A stretch of DNA of 64,000 bases from Orbicella franksi (taxonomy: Eukaryota): assembly GCA_964199315.1 (NCBI GenBank), contig OZ116698.1, forward strand, positions 11,656,001 to 11,720,000. The letters are read 5' to 3'. The notes beneath the pieces were generated by a model. It did no database searches. It worked only from the letters and a program-made list of their open reading frames with translations, and had not been told where the DNA came from. Every line of letters begins with the position of its first letter. Positions within the stretch are counted from its first letter, which is position 1. The translations under genes and the position numbers were made by a program. Below are positions 46,417 through 56,200 of this stretch, piece by piece.

Positions 46417-49001
46417 TTAGGCTGAATTTTAATATATCGAAATTGGTCTATTATTACAACTTATTGTAACTGAATGCCTAGTCCAGTCCTCGAAATCTTT
46501 ATGCCTCTCTCTTAACCCTATCTAAATGCAGGGAACAGATAACAAACGGAAGTTCAGAGACTGAATTACATGATACCAGCTCCTGCACCTGTGCCATCCG
46601 CACGTCAATTAAGTGGACTTTCACGGCTTCTTTCATTACAACTGACTTTTTCGCTAAAAGAAGTTCTTCTTAATATCGAAATTTGTAATTTCTTATTATT
46701 TCAAATCGGCCTCGTGCTGCACGCTCGACTGATTTTTGAAACCTGAATTTTTTTCAGGCTTTCATTTCACAGCTGCTTAATCATAAGCTGTGTATATAAC
46801 TGCGATGATCAATCATGTCTTCATGAAATGTTCCCTATTCGGTCCAGTGGCTAATACTTATTTACCAGTTACTATATCATCACCCTCAAGGGAGTATTGA
46901 GGATCAAAGTGAAAAATTTAACTAAATAAGCATTAACTTCACTAACTGAACTAGATGGCAGCCTTGAAACTGGACAAACTTTCACACAAACCAGCTGTCT
47001 CGTTCCAGTCACACAGTTGTTATATCGTTCACGCGGAAAATAGTTAGCGTTAAGTCACAATCACTAGGTATTTAATTAATACCGTAGAAATCTCCAAGAA
47101 GCAACTTATTAACTTTTCCATTAATCACATATATATATTTTCTCTCCCTTTGTCGCCAAAAGTGCTGAAGCAATGAAAAACAATACCGGAACCTCGATGA
47201 AAATATGGAAACATGATCACCGGGGAACCGCTATGACGTCACGAAAGCGGCGTCTCGGCTGAATGGAGGTATACAGGTCCATAAAGGATAAAGGCATTTC
47301 ACTTTCGGCAGTCAACACTCCAACCGAATTCGTAGGTGTGTCCACGCTTGATGTTCTAAACTTCAATCAGCCTAAAATCTTCGTTCACAAGCCAGAATCT
47401 TGTACCAAGGTAGGGATAATACATGTGTGTTGTGACTGGTAATGTCACTCTTGGCTCAACTTGGTTATATGACACTTCGATCTTTCAATTGAAAATGTTT
47501 TAGCTACAAATCACTGACAAATGCGAAAGTACTCCCTTAGAACTTAGTGATCGGTTAGCTATGTCAAGAAAGTTTACATTTAGAAGAGAAATCAATATGA
47601 ACTTTTTACAGTTGGTGTTTAAGAAAGTTACCACACAAGATCTCGATCGAAAGATCATTGTGCTTATGAGGTAAAATTTCTCCAAAACTTTGGCCGCTAC
47701 TATCTAGAATTGCGAAAAAATAGCACAAAATTGCAGCTTTTTCTTTACTGTGTCCGCCTGTGAGACAAATTTCGACTTTTTCGTGCTTTGGAAGCTGAGT
47801 AAAAATCGTAATGGCGAAACATTTAGGCAGTTACGATCACTCAACATCGCTGAACGTATAGTTGAGGTTCACTCTGTTCATTGACTTCGCTCGTATAATT
47901 TAGAGTATGCCCTTCGAAGGGCAAAGGCGAAGTATATTGTAAAAGATACATTTCAGCTTTTTGCAGTGAACCCGGCTTTAACGGTAAAAAAAACATAAAC
48001 TTTTATTTGAAAGAGAACTATTTCAAGAAAACCGAAAGTACGGTAGTGAACGAAAGCGGAAGTAGCCACATGGGCCAGTGGCCATCGCATATGCAAATCC
48101 AACATACATCACCCACGTAACATTTGAAAGGGAATCAACCTAGTTTTCCTTTCAGTTCCTCAGTAAGAGTGCCTCTTCCCGGCAATAATTTTATTAACAT
48201 CATAATATGGAGGAGGTGGTGTAAATTTTCAGTTTTCAATGCCCGTTATGCTAAAAGAAAACGTTATTTGACATATGTAATGTATCAAATTACATGGCTT
48301 GTTGGTTCTGGCTTATAGGCCAGTGGGAAATCTAACCATACAATGAAAGATGGCAACCTTGACTGAAAAAGAACTTGAGTGAATTTTATGAAGCTCTCCT
48401 GGCTCGAAGTGTCACATTTTTGCACATTAAGTGAACAGTGTTATCAGGCCCCGTGAGCAGCTGGTTTCTCTTTGGCGTAGAAGAAACCAACTGTGTGCTC
48501 GCAGTTGGTTTCACTTCTTTGCTTCAGGGCCATTCCCTTGCGTCCGCCACCAAACACAGACACTTTCAATTTACACAATTTTGAATCTGTTGCAAACCGT
48601 GGCGAATATTGCGAATCCGAAATGTAAACAATTTACACGAAATTTAGCCAATCAGATACTAATTTAGCTGGTGAACTACGATATCTTTGCGGAATAAAAT
48701 TGAGCCGGAAGTATGGTTGTGCTAAGGAGGCAACGTTTCCGGTCTTTCCCTTGTCAGTGTAAATTTCCCGCGGAAATGCTTTTATGCATGGTTGGACTAT
48801 TTCCCCCGTCTAAGAGCCTCAATGACTACGCTGTCGCTAAGGAGGACTTATTACCCGTATATCTTCGGATTTCCCGCTTCTAAATATAAGCTAAATATAA
48901 GCTAAACATTTGGTTGTATTTAAGTGTTTCATTGATAGCCCCTTAACACTGATTTTTGAGTCATGTCATAAGAGAATGTTCTACTTCATTTACTTTCCAG
49001 C

Positions 49002-51482
49002 ATGTCTTCCCTCTTGGATGTGCCTCTAGAAGAAACCACAGGAGACGAGGACGTTACATACATATTTGAAAAAGATAAGCATGCCAAAATTTTGCTGGAG
49101 AACCTTGCCGAGATGCAATCTCAACATGGATTGTTCACTGATTTGAGCCTGACCACCAGAGCACAGGATTACAAAGTGAACTTCCATTCGATGCTGCTCG
49201 CAGCTTGCAGTCCGGCACTCAAAAAGCTTCTTGTATCGAGGAGCCCTAATGAGGGTACAAAGCGAAGTATAGTGCTTCAAGGACTGACCAAGGAGGTGCT
49301 GGAGTGTTTCAGAGAATTCATCTACAAGTCCGAAGTCACAGTGGACGAAGACATCCTGGATGACCTTCACAACTTTGCAGTCAAGTACGACATTGACGTG
49401 CTAGCGACAATCCGTGGGGAGCTTGAGGATCAGCGAGGAAGTGACCCGGTGAAATTTGCGTTTGATAATCATGAAGATGTGCTTTCAGAGCTTTTTGACA
49501 TGTTCATGGAGAAGGAATTAACCACAACAGTCTTGGAGGACCAGAAGAGCGACAATCGGTTTGCAGTTCATGGGCCTGTCATAGCGGCAGCTTCACCTGC
49601 GTTTAAGGAAGCTCTGTTACACGGTTCGTCAGCCCGAGAAAGGAAGAAATTTCGATTGGATATTCCGTCTATTGCTCTAGCAGATGTCATCGGATACATC
49701 TACTCAGCAAAAGTAACCGTACAACGCAGAAATGCCGTTGGCCTGCTAAGAGCCGCTTGCACCTACGAGATGCCTGCACTTGCTAAAGTCTGCTGTGATT
49801 GGCTGATTTCAAAACTGCACACTTATGACGTGGCGGGCCTTCTATGCTTGTGCAGGGAACTGGATTCTGTGTACACTTTAAATCTTATAGAGGAGTGCAA
49901 GAACCACATTATCGCCAATTTCAGTGAGTTGTCTGCAGAAGACGAATTTAATGTTCTGGGTTACGAAGATCTTAAAGAACTCATCCAGCACGACAGCCTA
50001 GACATTAAGTACGAAGAAGACGTTGTTGATGTTGTGATGAAATGGATAGGCCATGCCGAAGAGACTCGTTTACCTCACCTGAGCGAGCTGTTGTCCTGTG
50101 CTCGGTTGGAGCAGACAAGCATGGAATTTCTTCACGACCTGGAGCAAGATCCCAGAATTGGAAATTCTCCTGGTTGCCTCCAAGTAATCGAGGTTGCTCG
50201 ACAAAGGCTGCAGGCTGCTGACGATCAATCTGAGGCTCGCTCAAGCAGTTACGATGAAGGATTTGAAGACTTCGAAAGCCGCGATGAAGATACCCTGTCT
50301 AGGCTCTCAGAAGAAACATTTTTGCCTGATCATGACGATGCATCATCCGCGTCCGATAGAGAAGGAGCCCAGCGACAGAGTCTGCGTGACAGCTGCCTGC
50401 ATGACGGCTACCGTCTTGATAGCAGCCATCATTCCGACAGCTATTCACCTGGTAGCTGCTCACGTGATTACTACCAGCCTGAAAGCTATTCGCTTGATAG
50501 CTACCAGCGCGACAACTACCCACGTGACAGCTACCAGCCCGACAACCACTCGCTTGACAGCTACCAGCCCGACAACTACTCGCGTGACAGCTACCAGTCT
50601 GATAACTCCTCACTTGACAGCTACTCGCGTGACAGCTACCAGCCCAGCAAATACTCGCGTGACGACTACCAGCCTGACCACTCACACAAAAGAAGACCCG
50701 GCACGCGCGTCGACGGCCGACCAGACATGCGGTGTAAAGAAAACCGTCAACTATACTTGGGAAAGGGAGTCAACAAAAACGGGACCCCAGACAAAAGGAT
50801 ACGGGAAAATAGGACAAAGTTTTTGAACAAAGACGGCAGTCCAGACATGCGCTGTAAGGTCAACAAAGGGGCAACCAGAAGTCCTTATGTCACAAGTCCA
50901 CTTAGCACTTCAGGCAGTGGGAGACCCTCTGGCGGAGCACGGTTTCCTTGGGAACTGTCACTTCCCACTGGTTACGTCGGTCCCCTGAAAGAAGATGGCA
51001 CTCCTGACATGCGCTGTAAAGCCAATAAAGAGGCAATCAGGAGTCCTTATTCAACAAGTTCAGTTTACACTTCAGTCAGTGGGAGGCTCCCTAGCGGAAT
51101 ACGGAATACGGAACTGCCACTCCCCTCTGGTTACGTCGGCGGGCCCTTGAAAAAAGATGGTACTCCGGACATGCGTTATGCTGCGAACAAACAACGCTGT
51201 GTGACAAGTTTAGCGGAAACAGGCCCCTCCTCGTATAGGCCATTAAAGAAGAATGGTACCCCCGACATGCGCTACGCTGTAAACAAACAACGCTGTGTGG
51301 CAAGTTCCGCGGCAGCAGACGCCTCCTCGCATGGGCCTCTGAAGAAAAATGGTACCCCGGACATGCGTTATGCTGTTAACAGGCGGCAAGCTCATTGTCC
51401 CTCTCCACCATCCTCCAAGACTCCTGGACCGCTGAAAAAAAATGGAACCCCGGATATGAGGTTCAAGGCCAACAGGCGATAA
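49002..51482 (+). CDS. BTB-BTB-BACK protein with an S/Y/D low-complexity tract and eight basic GTPDMR repeats (826 aa, single coding exon)
   Basis: 2481-nt open ORF. BTB1 FTDLSL...FHSMLLAACSPALKKLL...FIYKSEV; BTB2 FAVHGPVIAAASPAFKEAL...IGYIYSAKV; BACK CKNHIIANFSELSAEDEFNVL...LDIKYEEDVVDVVMKWI. No Kelch repeats. A splice acceptor TTTACTTTCCAG ends at 49000, 1 nt before the ATG. AATAAA at 51933. Confidence 0.9.
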   Translation: MSSLLDVPLEETTGDEDVTYIFEKDKHAKILLENLAEMQSQHGLFTDLSLTTRAQDYKVNFHSMLLAACSPALKKLLVSRSPNEGTKRSIVLQGLTKEVLECFREFIYKSEVTVDEDILDDLHNFAVKYDIDVLATIRGELEDQRGSDPVKFAFDNHEDVLSELFDMFMEKELTTTVLEDQKSDNRFAVHGPVIAAASPAFKEALLHGSSARERKKFRLDIPSIALADVIGYIYSAKVTVQRRNAVGLLRAACTYEMPALAKVCCDWLISKLHTYDVAGLLCLCRELDSVYTLNLIEECKNHIIANFSELSAEDEFNVLGYEDLKELIQHDSLDIKYEEDVVDVVMKWIGHAEETRLPHLSELLSCARLEQTSMEFLHDLEQDPRIGNSPGCLQVIEVARQRLQAADDQSEARSSSYDEGFEDFESRDEDTLSRLSEETFLPDHDDASSASDREGAQRQSLRDSCLHDGYRLDSSHHSDSYSPGSCSRDYYQPESYSLDSYQRDNYPRDSYQPDNHSLDSYQPDNYSRDSYQSDNSSLDSYSRDSYQPSKYSRDDYQPDHSHKRRPGTRVDGRPDMRCKENRQLYLGKGVNKNGTPDKRIRENRTKFLNKDGSPDMRCKVNKGATRSPYVTSPLSTSGSGRPSGGARFPWELSLPTGYVGPLKEDGTPDMRCKANKEAIRSPYSTSSVYTSVSGRLPSGIRNTELPLPSGYVGGPLKKDGTPDMRYAANKQRCVTSLAETGPSSYRPLKKNGTPDMRYAVNKQRCVASSAAADASSHGPLKKNGTPDMRYAVNRRQAHCPSPPSSKTPGPLKKNGTPDMRFKANRR

Positions 51483-52255
51483 GGCCGAGAGAACCCTAAA
51501 CTTTTATTAGTAGTGGATTTGTTGTTCACCAGAGTAACTAAAGACGTAGAATCGCAGTTGTTGTAGTTTCAGTTTTAAAGCGATATTTTTGTAATTTTTT
51601 GAGCAAAAGGCTAGTAGAGCATGGTTATTGACAGCACTTTGATCCAGTATGAATTTCTTGACGAGTAATAATTAATTCGTTCGTCCGTTTTCTTAGTCGC
51701 CCTTCCCCCACTAACTGTTTTGTCATTTCGAACTTGCCCTAATGTTCGAGTTAACTCTGTGACGAATATTAGTAACAAGGAAGTTAAAGATGTTAAGAGC
51801 CTGTTAATGTTATGTTAATTCGCACGGTACGAAGAAATGAAGGTTTAACTACAATGTCTTCCGGTTTTGTTAAAATTTGAAAGGCTGACGTTTGCGTCAC
51901 ATTTTTTGGAGCGTATGCACCCTACCAGAAAGAATAAAGCTTTACAACCTTGACTGACGATAAATGTGATTAATGTCTATCGCGAGGGGATTGGAGACGA
52001 TCACGACCCTGGTTTCTTCCTCTTCCACTTCGCTCGTGCCCATGACTTTTTCGGCGTTACTTTTCAAGATTGCGGCAGGACTTGGTCCCTATCTACCCGC
52101 TTGTCCCGCATGCCCGACAGACACGTGGCGCATTCTGGCGGAAGTTATGTTGCAAAATACGAGAATAATTCGACATATTAATGTATATGATCGTTTATAA
52201 TTCATTCTCCTGTTGAATATTTATAGTTCCAAAGAGAAATCTTCTGCACACTTTT

Positions 52256-52384
52256 AGCCTGTTCCAGGCTCTCGGTCAGTGGGGGACGATCGAAAAAGCG
52301 GGCGGCCGACGAGTGGGGACTGGGAGAGAAAACGCCTGCCCGCTTTTATATCGTCCCCACTTCCCGAGGGCCTGGAACAGGTTA
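52256..52384. mobile_element. MITE (TAGCCTGTTCCAGGC family)
   Basis: TIRs TAGCCTGTTCCAGGC / GCCTGGAACAGGTTA. Confidence 0.7.
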
Positions 52385-53219
52385 GCCGGCTCCATATCGA
52401 GAACTCTCACCGCGCAATGACGTCATAAATTACCATGAAGTAAGCATGGCGAAGCTCAGGTGCTTAAAACTGAAATTCAATTACTTCGTATTCGAACTAT
52501 TTACCAGAGATATCTACTCGAAACCCCAGGATCAGTTGCAGAGAACTAAGTACACTTGAAACTTACACTGCTTTTGAGCCAAGACTCCTTTAAACGGATG
52601 TTCAAAAACGGAGAATTTGAAATTTGCTTGTCCCATTTCTCCTAGATTCTCACTTTCCTTATCCTTCTTAGAATAAAAATCACCAGCCACATATTGATTG
52701 CTTTACCACGTTTAATGAATCCTCAACAGAGTCAACGTCCGGACTACAGCTAAATGACGGTCACACTCTGACACACAGCAAAAAAACACCTCAACGGAAC
52801 CAATCAATAAACAGCAAGACATGAAATGCTTCAGTAAAGCTTCTTGATCAAGAAGCCTTGAAAATGAACCACTGCCTTAGGAAACACGGCTTTCCTATTG
52901 ATAGTTTAAGCATGCTCTGGCCCAAATTTCTGACGATACATGAACTCATGTTTGCTAATATAATAGAGCTTTCCAATATCCTGGCTAAACATTATCTTGG
53001 TAACAACTGATAACTCTTATACACAGTCATCACGGTAGATACCAGAAAGATATGCTTATTATCTTACTGACTAAGTGATGTTGACTGGTAAATAAGACCA
53101 TACAGATGTCTCTAGGACGAGCTATACTTGTTATTCTTTCTGTAACTCTATTCCGTGAGGTGTTTCATGTCTTCAGATAAACATACCAATGTGTTAATTT
53201 TTATGCTGGACTCACTAAT

Positions 53220-56200
53220 CTAACTAGAAGAGAAAAGTTCCTCGCAGAACGTTTTGTAGTCGTAGGCTCCCGGAATCTCTCGGCCTTTGTCGTCGACGTA
53301 CGGACGCATCCGTTCGATACAGTACTCGGCCTGCTCCTTGGTGAGAGACTGGAACGAGAGAGAGAGAATAACGATTAATACCTGGGGGGCAAATAACCGT
53401 GCCAAATTCGTGAAAGTTAAGGCTCCTCGAGGCTCAACTTCACAAGCACTACAAATTAAAATTAACGCATCAAGACGAAATAATATGACATACAGGATAC
53501 GGTATCCCCATATTTTTGAATGATTACCTGGTAGAGTTCAGCCTCAGTAACATAAGGACGTTTGCCTCCTTCAGTGAGCGCCTTGAAGGCATTGATGACT
53601 TCCTGACTGGAACCAACATTTTCCGTCTCACGGCTGATCATGAAGGACATGTACTCTCCCATAGATACCACACCGTCACTGCGAAGATACAGAAGAAGAA
53701 CTGCTGTCAGCATTGTGTACAATAAACGTTATCTGCGACTTTATCGTTACGAGATGGGCTTTAAGAAAGCTCCTTCACTTTGGTTTAGTTCGATCAATAA
53801 AGGGACGTTTTCATTTGGAGAGTGAAACGTTAAGTAAATTTATACTGTAAAAAATTATGTAACTTTTTGATCCTGGTTTGTCACATTTTCAGTGAAAACT
53901 ATTGACCTGAATGAGGATTAGTTAGGCTGTTGTCTTCACCTCCTACAAAAAGAGATCTACAGGCTCGTCACGCAATCTTTCCTAAGAAACGCGTGACGAG
54001 CACAAAGAGCGATGCTGTGATTAGCATGCGGCTCGCCAGTGAGCTGAATATTGAAAACAGTTTTACATCTTTATCACCAGAGTCCACACTGCCCCTTCAA
54101 GGCGTCAATCCAACCTACCCATTCGGATCCACAGTCCTGAGGATGGCTTGAAACTCTGGATCTTCCTCACCCTCCTCCACAATGGACAGATCGTAACCAA
54201 GGGAACGCAGGCAGGACTTGAACTCTTGGTGATCCAGGTAACCAGTCTTGTCCTTGTCAAAGTGCCTGAAAAAATAGAGGTATTGCAAATTGAAGTTTTT
54301 TTTGTCAATTTAACAGGCGCACCATTGGAAAACTACAGTCAACTTCCGCCTTGGGGACACCTCGCTATTACGGACAACCCGCTATTACGGACAGCAGCTA
54401 AATCCCCAGCGAAAGTTACAGACGTTTGACTGAAACAAACTCCCGCTATTAAGGACTCTCGCTATTACGGACTTACAGATACTTTATTCGGCCCCAACGT
54501 CACAATTTTATTATTTTCTCTCTCGTTATAGCGGACACCGAGCAGCATCTTGGAATATTTGCACACATATCAAGTCTATTTTTTCTGCTTTTGGAGATTG
54601 TCTTTGTCTTTTTTGGTCGATTTCCGCTTCTTCTGTCCATCAATCAAAACTTCTTCATCTTTTTCTCTTAAGGCCCTCTTTACAGTCTCGCTGCCATGAA
54701 TAAGTTCGTCCAGTCTGTCCAAATATTATAACATAAAAATTTTCTCGCACCCCGCTATTACGGACTCTCGCTATTACGGACACCAAATCGCGGTCCCGAG
54801 GGTGTTCGCTATAACGGAAGTTGACTGTACGCGCAAACAAGACGGCATCATTGTGAAAAGAGTGGTGGGAGAGGCAGAAAGAGATGGAGTCACCTGCAAA
54901 TACGGACGCGCATTCTCAAACCCCACCTACAGAAAATCAAATGAGGAATGACACGGATGAAAGCAAAGTAACTGGTTCAGAACGGAGTGGGATGGAAAGA
55001 AGAGGATCGCAATTACAGTCCACAAGAAATTGAAAGAGAAAAAAAGCACATTCGGTGTAGTGTTCACAGCCAGACTATTGCTGTTTTAGTTCATCGTTCG
55101 TGTTTTGCACAGTAGGGACAAAATACTTACTTGAACATGATGGTGAATTCTTTGAGGGTCTCTTCGGAAACGCCGGTAGTATTGCGGGCCTGGATTTGCT
55201 GTTCCAGATTGTGCTTCATGCGCATGGCCAGTTGATCCAGCTGGTCCCACTGCTGGGCAAGATCCACGGTGCTGTGTTCGGTGTATCTATATCAACAACA
55301 CATCACATGTTAATAATGTAGGTGCACAAATAGTCCGCGTCGGGTCAAGTGGCCTACACAGTCAGAGCTTATCCCGGTTTCTGTAGCATTAAGCAACTAG
55401 GAGTATTTCTACTCCCTCCTGGATGGGATGCTGTAGTCCATCGCAGGGTTAAAGGAGCCACGCCACGGCTTGCGCACCTTGAAAAGTTTAGCTTAAATTT
55501 TTCAAGTTCGTCGTTTGTAATCCGTGTTAATCTTCTCCATCCTTCACCATCCTTGTCCCTTTATGGTGTATTATTGTCTTTTTGGTATTTTTCTATCTTA
55601 GTTTACTATTTTCAGGTTTCCTTCAATTTTAAGGCAATATTGTACACGGCCAAAATAACTCAAAATACCGTACTAGAACAGCAAATCAAAGGTTGATGAT
55701 TGTGTCATGATGTAAGAAAATAGATGATAAAGAACTATGTCAAAAAAATAGCGCAAACTAAAAAGAACACCCTATGAAGAACTCACTTGTTGTCCAGGAT
55801 GAGGGCCTCTTCCATTTGGGCGCCAAGATCTTCAATGATCCTTAGGTCCTCTTTTCTGTCAGCTATCTCAGCACTCTTCTTCTTGACCTCTGCCAACTGA
55901 TCTTCAAGGTCTCCCTGCCCGTCAACCATTGCCACCCTAAATGAGAGAAAGAATTCTAGAGTGAGAAGTTTTGTTCTGCAAGCTATGACGTCTTCGGTAG
56001 AATACTCAACACTATTTCGCGAGGAGTTGCGCTAAGCCATGACTTAACAGATCCGTTTCTACAGCTCACAGGAAAGATCTAGGCCTTTTGACGGCATTAA
56101 CCTTGACACAACAAGGATTGACGAACGTAAAAGTTATCTTTAGTTATGACCTTATTTTAGCAAGTAGTTTGTGTCCGTCTCACCTTGTGTCAGAAAGCCA

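Follow-up and report, generated by a model that had tools for sequence, protein, structure and literature searches.

The Gene and Its Transcript

A 64,000-nucleotide (nt) stretch of the coral Orbicella franksi genome (GCA_964199315.1, contig OZ116698.1, positions 11,656,001–11,720,000 of the forward strand), referred to here as the window, contains a plus-strand gene for a protein with two BTB domains, one BACK domain and a C-terminal tail carrying eight copies of a short basic motif, named here DGTPDMR after its central residues. The protein is a real, conserved variant of the BTB-BACK adaptors, and the motif in its tail is an undescribed one that spans bacteria, phages and eukaryotes. In the open reading frame (ORF) listing, the gene forms one complete frame at 49002–51482 on the plus strand, of 826 amino acids and a stop codon. 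A relative of the same length, Orbicella faveolata XP_020626463.1 (826 amino acids), belongs to the same 90% cluster and is annotated only as “uncharacterized protein LOC110063807.”

Fourteen RNA runs, drawn from about nine studies and including PolyA libraries, contain at least 94% of the coding words, and in four runs transcript contigs cover 48999–52284 without a joint. The contigs carry 150–250 additional letters 5′ of 48999, and loose 5′ contig ends from two runs are placed uniquely at 47378–47407. An AG acceptor lies at 48999–49000, directly ahead of the ATG. Together, the mapped 5′ exon and the acceptor therefore define an intron of ∼1.6 kb in the 5′ untranslated region (UTR), one coding exon and a 0.8-kb 3′ UTR. 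The repeat tail belongs to the mature mRNA, and the BTB-BTB-BACK gene with its motif tail is a genuine, expressed coral gene.

47378–47407, plus strand: final 30 nt of a non-coding 5′ exon (unique mapping of the loose contig ends before 48999)
49002–51482, plus strand: coding sequence, 826 amino acids and stop, single exon (ORF listing; joint-free RNA contigs in four runs)
51483–52284, plus strand: 3′ UTR of ∼0.8 kb (uninterrupted transcript contigs over 48999–52284)

A BTB-BTB-BACK Scaffold Resembling CUL3 Adaptors

Pfam recognizes BTB (PF00651, E value 7.4e-24) in two stretches and BACK (PF07707, E value 1.8e-18) at residues 294–380 and nothing else, with no match to Kelch at E ≤ 1 in the 826-residue protein. 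AlphaFold2, run on an alignment of 45 relatives, predicts residues 1–415 with a predicted local distance difference test score (pLDDT) of ∼90, and the helical region extends past the BACK domain to about residue 415.

49065–49391, plus strand: BTB 1, about residues 22–130 (Pfam; residues 26–125 align with the gigaxonin BTB; AlphaFold2 pLDDT ∼90)
49503–49814, plus strand: BTB 2, residues 168–271, KLHL-like (best Pfam BTB stretch; aligns with KLHL3, KEAP1 and KBTBD2)
49881–50141, plus strand: BACK, residues 294–380 (Pfam E value 1.8e-18; KLHL3 alignment reaches residue 395; pLDDT >90 to residue 410)

Residues 145–408 align with the BTB-BACK region of the solved CUL3 adaptors KLHL3, gigaxonin, KEAP1, KBTBD2 and KLHL11, over ∼210 residues and with E values from 1.6e-21 (KLHL3) to 2.2e-11. 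Docking on CUL3 by BTB-BACK proteins is established for the KLHL family, and the BACK domain is a hallmark of CUL3 adaptors. The likeness to KLHL3, gigaxonin and KEAP1 suggests that the coral protein may bind CUL3 as well. BTB and BACK, in a confidently predicted fold, are common to the coral protein and these KLHL/KBTBD adaptors. In contrast to them, the coral protein has an additional BTB domain at its N terminus, and in place of a Kelch propeller it carries ∼400 disordered residues with eight short motifs.

The tandem BTB domains could instead serve oligomerization only, as they do in many BTB proteins. The protein would then be a multimeric scaffold gathering the motif arrays together, on chromatin or membranes for instance, and would take no part in ubiquitination. 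Tandem BTB proteins with other roles exist, and the motif is also joined to enzymes outside the ubiquitin system, such as kinases and GTPases (below). The hydrophobic-x-Glu contact with CUL3 is not clearly aligned with that of KLHL3 either: in the BTB 2 alignment the M-S-E of KLHL3 faces S-A-R-E-R with a gap and is not cleanly matched, a point that weighs against CUL3 docking. However, BTB 2 and the full BACK domain, the domain typical of such adaptors, are nearest to solved CUL3-binding KLHL/KBTBD proteins, and parallel fusions to RBR E3 ligases indicate that the motif has repeatedly been coupled to ubiquitin ligases. We consider a purely oligomerizing scaffold improbable, the least favored of the readings weighed here, and continue with a CUL3-type adaptor as the preferred one.

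A Disordered Tail with Eight Motif Copies

From residue 420 to the C terminus at 826, the AlphaFold2 model has pLDDT <50 outside the short motifs. The ∼145–160 residues ahead of the motif tail are acidic, with an isoelectric point (pI) of 4.3, and the motif tail itself is basic (pI 10.4). Within the acidic linker, Tandem Repeats Finder detects ∼11 pentapeptides of the [D/E]-x-Y or D-S-Y-x-x type, with a 15-nt period at 50471–50640; the widest overlapping row for this array spans 50436–50643. The pentapeptide array, which is kept in the Oculina ortholog and absent from the paralog group, may offset the charge of the basic tail.

Eight matches to G[TSR]PD[MK]R...N lie in the C-terminal 265 residues, with the motif glycines encoded at nt 50715, 50781, 50835, 50997, 51159, 51255, 51351 and 51444. 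When the tail was shuffled 100,000 times with its composition preserved, the mean was 1e-5 motifs and the maximum 1, against the eight observed, and the motif is absent elsewhere in all six frames of the 64,000-nt window. At the DNA level, copies 3–8 can be traced to tandem units of 162 nt and 96 nt. Copy 8 is followed by a single arginine and the stop codon, and the motif therefore lies at the extreme C terminus.

50259–50693, plus strand: acidic, Tyr-rich disordered linker, residues 420–564 (pI 4.3; pLDDT <35; Tandem Repeats Finder)
50697–50747, plus strand: motif copy 1, degenerate prefix, ..VDGRPDMRCKENR (motif scan)
50763–50813, plus strand: motif copy 2, ..NKNGTPDKRIRENR, K replacing M (motif scan)
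50817–50867, plus strand: motif copy 3, ..NKDGSPDMRCKVNK (motif scan)
50979–51029, plus strand: motif copy 4, GPLKEDGTPDMRCKANK (motif scan; tandem repeats)
51141–51191, plus strand: motif copy 5, GPLKKDGTPDMRYAANK (motif scan; tandem repeats)
51237–51287, plus strand: motif copy 6, RPLKKNGTPDMRYAVNK (motif scan; tandem repeats)
51333–51383, plus strand: motif copy 7, GPLKKNGTPDMRYAVNR (motif scan; tandem repeats)
51426–51476, plus strand: motif copy 8, GPLKKNGTPDMRFKANR (motif scan)

A first-pass annotation of this DNA had described two BTB domains and one BACK domain followed by eight repeats with no Kelch propeller, and both Pfam and the motif scan against shuffled tails confirm that layout. 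The positions and strings it gave are correct for all eight copies, but the uniform GPLKK-and-M form that it ascribed to them does not hold: copies 1–3 have no GPLKK prefix, and in copy 2 the M is replaced by K.

Consensus, Predicted Shape and Conservation of the Motif

Pooling 585 copies from relatives yields the 17-residue consensus GPLKKDGTPDMR[YF]xxN[KR], that is, G-P-L-K-K-D-G-T-P-D-M-R-[YF]-x-x-N-[KR]. In these copies, the residue ahead of the glycine is D in 87% and the residue following it is T in 71%. The next position is P in 72% or L in 22%, and then come D (99%), M (87%), an aromatic Y or F (87%), N near the end (81%, with S in 17%) and a final K or R (90%). Successive copies are separated by 18 to >100 residues (median 37), with linkers rich in S, Y, G and P. 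Across 45 orthologs and paralogs with 28%–86% identity, the near-invariant columns of the tail are motif residues and the linkers diverge; selection acts on the individual motifs of the tail and not on an overall fold.

AlphaFold2 models every copy alike, with a bridge that closes a loop over K-K-D-G-T and then a short helix over D-M-R-Y-x-x-N. The motifs of the coral protein have pLDDT 55–77 and the linkers <35. A bacterial two-copy segment, modeled from a deeper alignment, reaches 76–80 with the identical turn and helix; its predicted template modeling score of 0.33 points to an absence of tertiary packing. Nothing in the PDB matched a 50-residue model in a fold search. The last copy ends 1–3 residues from the C terminus, typically as ...ANRR, in 62 of the ∼150 motif proteins analyzed (∼65% of those with a C-terminal array).

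Some of these properties would also suit a tail that has no external ligand, a regulatory or condensate-forming disordered region in which opposite charges and Thr-Pro sites would control self-association, localization or turnover. The motif might in addition be a docking site for one conserved protein. The acidic block directly adjoins the basic one, predicted disorder past residue 420 is interrupted only by the local motifs, the linkers of relatives are S/Y/G-rich and prion-like, every copy has an invariant T/S-P, and the placement of the last copy resembles that of a terminal signal. However, 8–10 residues are near-invariant across bacteria, phages and eukaryotes, which exceeds what charge patterning or phospho-sites need, and a eukaryotic kinase or docking partner cannot be common to periplasmic proteins of bacteria and proteins of phages. 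The paralog group, moreover, lacks the acidic spacer. We find a ligand-free tail rather unlikely and prefer to read the array as a recognition module.

BTB-BTB-BACK proteins with these repeats are found in many scleractinians, including Porites, Stylophora, Oculina and Desmophyllum. The brachiopod Lingula has a BTB protein with the repeats, so the architecture is shared there in part. The first-pass annotation had called it a new adaptor architecture, which stands with respect to the literature and the domain databases, but the architecture itself is old and common to many corals. In the whole Orbicella genome (497 Mb), only two genes carry DGTPDMR, the gene described here and one paralog. The latter lies on the minus strand at contig positions 11635577–11637760 (L002), 18–20 kb upstream of the window start and ∼70 kb upstream of the gene. 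It encodes the same BTB-BTB-BACK scaffold with ∼11 motif copies, and a short acidic linker replaces the Tyr-rich pentapeptide array.

The Motif in Bacteria and Phages

A prokaryote scan covered one genome per species, with 600 stretches among the matches listed, and tblastn confirmed at least 473 bacterial loci. Among the matches listed, these are mostly from Bacteroidota (Chitinophagaceae, Pedobacter, Mucilaginibacter), with others from Chlorobium, Bdellovibrionaceae, Janthinobacterium and Dadabacteria. The bacterial carriers are small proteins in which a signal peptide is followed by a Lys/Ala/Thr-rich stretch and then by at least two near-perfect C-terminal copies. One secreted protein of 564 residues, from a Bdellovibrionaceae metagenome-assembled genome (L043:4926-6617), has three canonical copies and two hybrid units ahead of a Tyr/Trp-rich C-terminal domain. 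The hybrid units, of the form Y.P.TGRPLNNDGT.DMR..EN.DL, combine a 2C_adapt-like half with a DGT.DMR half.

In IMG/VR, two kinds of protein have one motif copy each, a long tape-measure-like protein and a protein of ∼552 amino acids whose C terminus matches the tail-completion/Neck1 family. The tape-measure-like carriers, on phage contigs L016, L017, L019, L026, L029 and L031, are 800–2250 amino acids long and contain one exact GPLK.DGTPDMRFK.NK copy, which immediately precedes a long multi-pass hydrophobic region. PHROGs contains no family for these proteins, and tblastn against the cultured-phage collection found no match.

An origin from eukaryotic giant viruses is not supported. Of the 26 IMG/VR loci, 17 were inspected, and their proteins have the look of phage structural components; one gene-dense contig that encodes a GIY-YIG carrier resisted assignment. 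The first-pass annotation had tentatively pointed to similar motifs in uncharacterized microbial proteins, which was right and, given at least 473 bacterial loci, understated. Its suggestion that the module might have come from a virus finds no backing, the viral matches being phage virion proteins and not proteins of eukaryotic viruses.

Partners of the Motif in Other Eukaryotic Proteins

An exhaustive HMMER search with the tail returned 329 clusters at 50% identity, and the non-repeat portions of the carriers fall into more than 40 unrelated groups. Among 91 representatives, the partner is a serine/threonine (S/T) kinase nearest to TAK1, RIPK and IRAK (TKL) in 20, an RBR/IBR E3 ligase in 9, GIY-YIG in another 9 and WWE/PARP in 2; GBP, AIG1 and RHD3 GTPases and others are also present. 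The array is C-terminal in most carrier groups and N-terminal in the kinases. A receptor-kinase topology was rejected for the latter, as the kinases with N-terminal repeats have neither a signal peptide nor a transmembrane segment. Named eukaryotic carriers include three Branchiostoma species, Ptychodera flava and Paulinella micropora, and others lie on unidentified eukaryotic contigs. By its sequence distribution, the motif appears to be a mobile, portable mini-module.

P0016 from Branchiostoma lanceolatum (1365 amino acids) has more than 30 motif copies, partly in a regular 22-residue array. Other copies are set apart by linkers of the S-Y-S-P-S-Y-S type, which resemble the C-terminal domain of RNA polymerase II and FUS-like low-complexity sequence. 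The protein ends in ...FKANRR, as does the coral protein.

The company that the motif keeps in eukaryotes suits a further possibility, that the array detects a microbial molecule in the cytosol, such as peptidoglycan, lipopolysaccharide or another envelope polymer. The coral protein would then be an innate-immune E3 adaptor and would belong to a set of receptors of marine invertebrates whose motif was taken from bacteria. TAK1/RIPK/IRAK-like kinases, RBR E3 ligases, WWE-PARP and GBP/AIG1 GTPases are typical of immune signaling, and innate immunity is expanded in carrier taxa such as corals, amphioxus, Lingula and Ptychodera. The export of the bacterial carriers, and phage carriers that cross or touch the cell envelope, also agree with such a role. 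On the other hand, the motif matches no known domain in Pfam that binds pathogen-associated molecular patterns and gives no match in PADLOC, and an immune role is not obvious for the proteins of Paulinella and other protists that carry it. The presence of only two motif genes in the Orbicella genome also argues that no receptor family has expanded there. We judge an immune sensor of this kind unlikely, and the preferred reading remains a CUL3-type adaptor with a multivalent recognition tail.

Comparison with Known Motifs

No model for the motif exists in Pfam at E ≤ 10, NCBIfam or PADLOC, and a search of a literature library found no paper in it with the core strings of the motif, the gene or protein accessions, or a coral BTB-BACK repeat protein. 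In the ESM Atlas, the coral tail gave no usable match. A bacterial carrier matched only unnamed Bacteroidota clusters and some clusters whose other members carry PF08789, and the clusters of bacterial carriers have no Pfam family in common. The first-pass annotation had allowed that the repeat might prove to be a characterized domain, or the gene to be silent. No such domain emerged from Pfam, NCBIfam or a whole-genome check for PF08789, and the gene is transcribed in the 14 RNA runs cited above.

PF08789, the PBCV-specific basic adaptor, was considered as the identity of the motif and rejected: its model has no match at E ≤ 10 in the coral protein, its tail or five bacterial carriers, and none in the whole coral genome. 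In carrier genomes, it matches a different protein with the C-terminal motif GR.IY.GPRGG.YYINKNGNK.YV. The two nevertheless have much in common. PF08789 is annotated in Pfam as fused to S/T kinases. It is short and basic and, like the coral motif (tail pI 10.4; 20 of 91 carriers), is joined to such kinases, and both occur at the C terminus of small secreted K/A-rich Bacteroidota proteins. The sequences that they comprise differ, the coral motif being unmatched by the PF08789 model. One sister protein of this Bacteroidota type, in a Sediminibacterium genome (L122:1081-1593, genome G004), ends in the PF08789 motif and not in DGTPDMR copies. PF08789 shares a polypeptide with the motif in P0199 and P0225. 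Judged from these arrangements, PF08789 and DGTPDMR are probably interchangeable C-terminal modules that sometimes occur together, as in P0225.

PF08793, the 2-cysteine adaptor, is likewise short and links basic repeats to one another. This adaptor motif shares a polypeptide with DGTPDMR, as a separate segment, in P0197, and a hybrid form is found in the Bdellovibrionaceae protein. In contrast, the coral motif has no conserved cysteine, and its consensus differs from the two-cysteine NP.TGR.I...G..Y core. On the sequence comparisons made, DGTPDMR, PF08789 and PF08793 are best regarded as separate members of one putative class of short adaptor motifs. The PBCV-1 kinases A278L and A282L, which carry PF08789, were recovered as DNA-associated virion proteins (PMC3281028), and in ascovirus P64 basic Arg/Ser repeats beside a PF08793 motif bind and condense DNA (PMC6163548).

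As multivalent basic short motifs on disordered chains, the coral copies also resemble SPKK/AT-hook type repeats and the repeats of ascovirus P64. Unlike these, the coral motif keeps to a set core of 17 residues that includes two invariant Asp, a Met and an aromatic residue, and it is exported in bacteria; DNA binding is only putative for it. A PDB profile match to PQQ-like and designer β-propellers (Scone, Cake, 3HXJ) was dismissed, as it rests on DGT...RFK.N with single-stretch E values of ≥17 and up to ∼1.4e5. A β-propeller blade, with ∼40 residues, four strands and a regular period, is ruled out by the spacing of 18 to >100 residues, the low-complexity linkers and the lack of predicted β sheet.

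Downstream Neighborhood

ORF pieces at 53220–53722 (minus strand) and 52255–53352 resemble C-terminal EF-hand exons of what we take to be an alpha-actinin-like gene, and RNA contig depth over them is very high. Their 3′ end converges with the 3′ UTR of the BTB gene near 52252–52284. A segment of ∼50 nt at 52256–52305, with a 1-nt deletion variant at 52281, recurs in many short RNA contigs whose loose ends to either side of it are unrelated; it looks like a dispersed short repeat where two convergent 3′ ends meet.

Proposed Function

BTB-BACK adaptors are normally read through their propeller. We propose a model, which we hold to be about evenly balanced between right and wrong, in which the coral protein is a CUL3-type BTB-BTB-BACK adaptor with a putative multivalent recognition tail. 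In this model, the KLHL-type scaffold would dimerize and dock on CUL3, and the C-terminal β-propeller would be replaced by the disordered tail, with its acidic Tyr-rich spacer and eight autonomous 17-residue motifs. In each copy, a two-turn helix would cap a tight turn and display Lys/Arg and one aromatic residue. Strung along flexible S/P/G-rich linkers, the copies would form a multivalent recognition or targeting module that steers the ligase toward a highly conserved ligand. The pattern expected of such a module is seen here: the local unit is strictly conserved, spacing and copy number are free, and fusion to catalytic or scaffolding domains has occurred repeatedly. With the array in the position of Kelch, a CUL3 adaptor directed by the array is the most economical reading.

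A polyanionic polymer (DNA, RNA or a poly-ADP-ribose-like chain) is our leading but tentative guess at the putative ligand. We lean toward a polyanion or nucleic acid because of the net charge of the tail (pI 10.4), the nuclease-type and PARP/WWE partners, and the company of PF08789 (PMC3281028) and PF08793 (PMC6163548). The position of the phage motif proteins near the DNA end points the same way. As the next-ranked guess, the ligand could be a microbial envelope component or an anionic membrane.

In addition to the imperfect CUL3 contact noted above, several points count against this model. Two invariant Asp per motif are unusual in a plain nucleic-acid binder, though they fit the turn and the helix N-cap. 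The bacterial carriers are exported, and nucleic acid is normally absent from the bacterial periplasm. No neighbor gene is conserved at 80 bacterial loci, the most frequent being common to at most 7 of the 80. Some eukaryotic partners come from automatic gene calls and may be fused models, a likely case being the Desmophyllum “Rad2 nuclease” P0135, and the matches to EEP/reverse-transcriptase partners may be fused gene models likewise. With exported bacterial carriers and immune-like eukaryotic partners, a microbial-envelope or membrane ligand fits equally well.

A more far-reaching version, which we consider quite unlikely, would make DGTPDMR a hitherto unrecognized, cross-domain ligand-recognition mini-module of bacterial origin, with a single conserved polymer of microbial or nucleic-acid-like nature as its target. 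Repeated capture by marine invertebrates and some protists would have linked it to BTB-BACK and RBR ligases, TAK1/RIPK-like kinases, PARPs and GBP/AIG1 GTPases. These fusions would make up a new class of pattern-recognition receptors in the cytosol, with the coral gene as the CUL3 arm of the system.

The recognition part of the coral protein is a string of short motifs, and the motif is a more interesting object than the adaptor. A near-invariant 17-residue unit is common to bacteria, phages, animals and protists and is repeatedly joined to ligases, kinases, PARPs, GTPases and nucleases. It is short enough for direct work with synthetic peptides. A name and a ligand for it would annotate hundreds of hypothetical proteins together and could expose a new targeting or sensing principle in the signaling of corals and other invertebrates.

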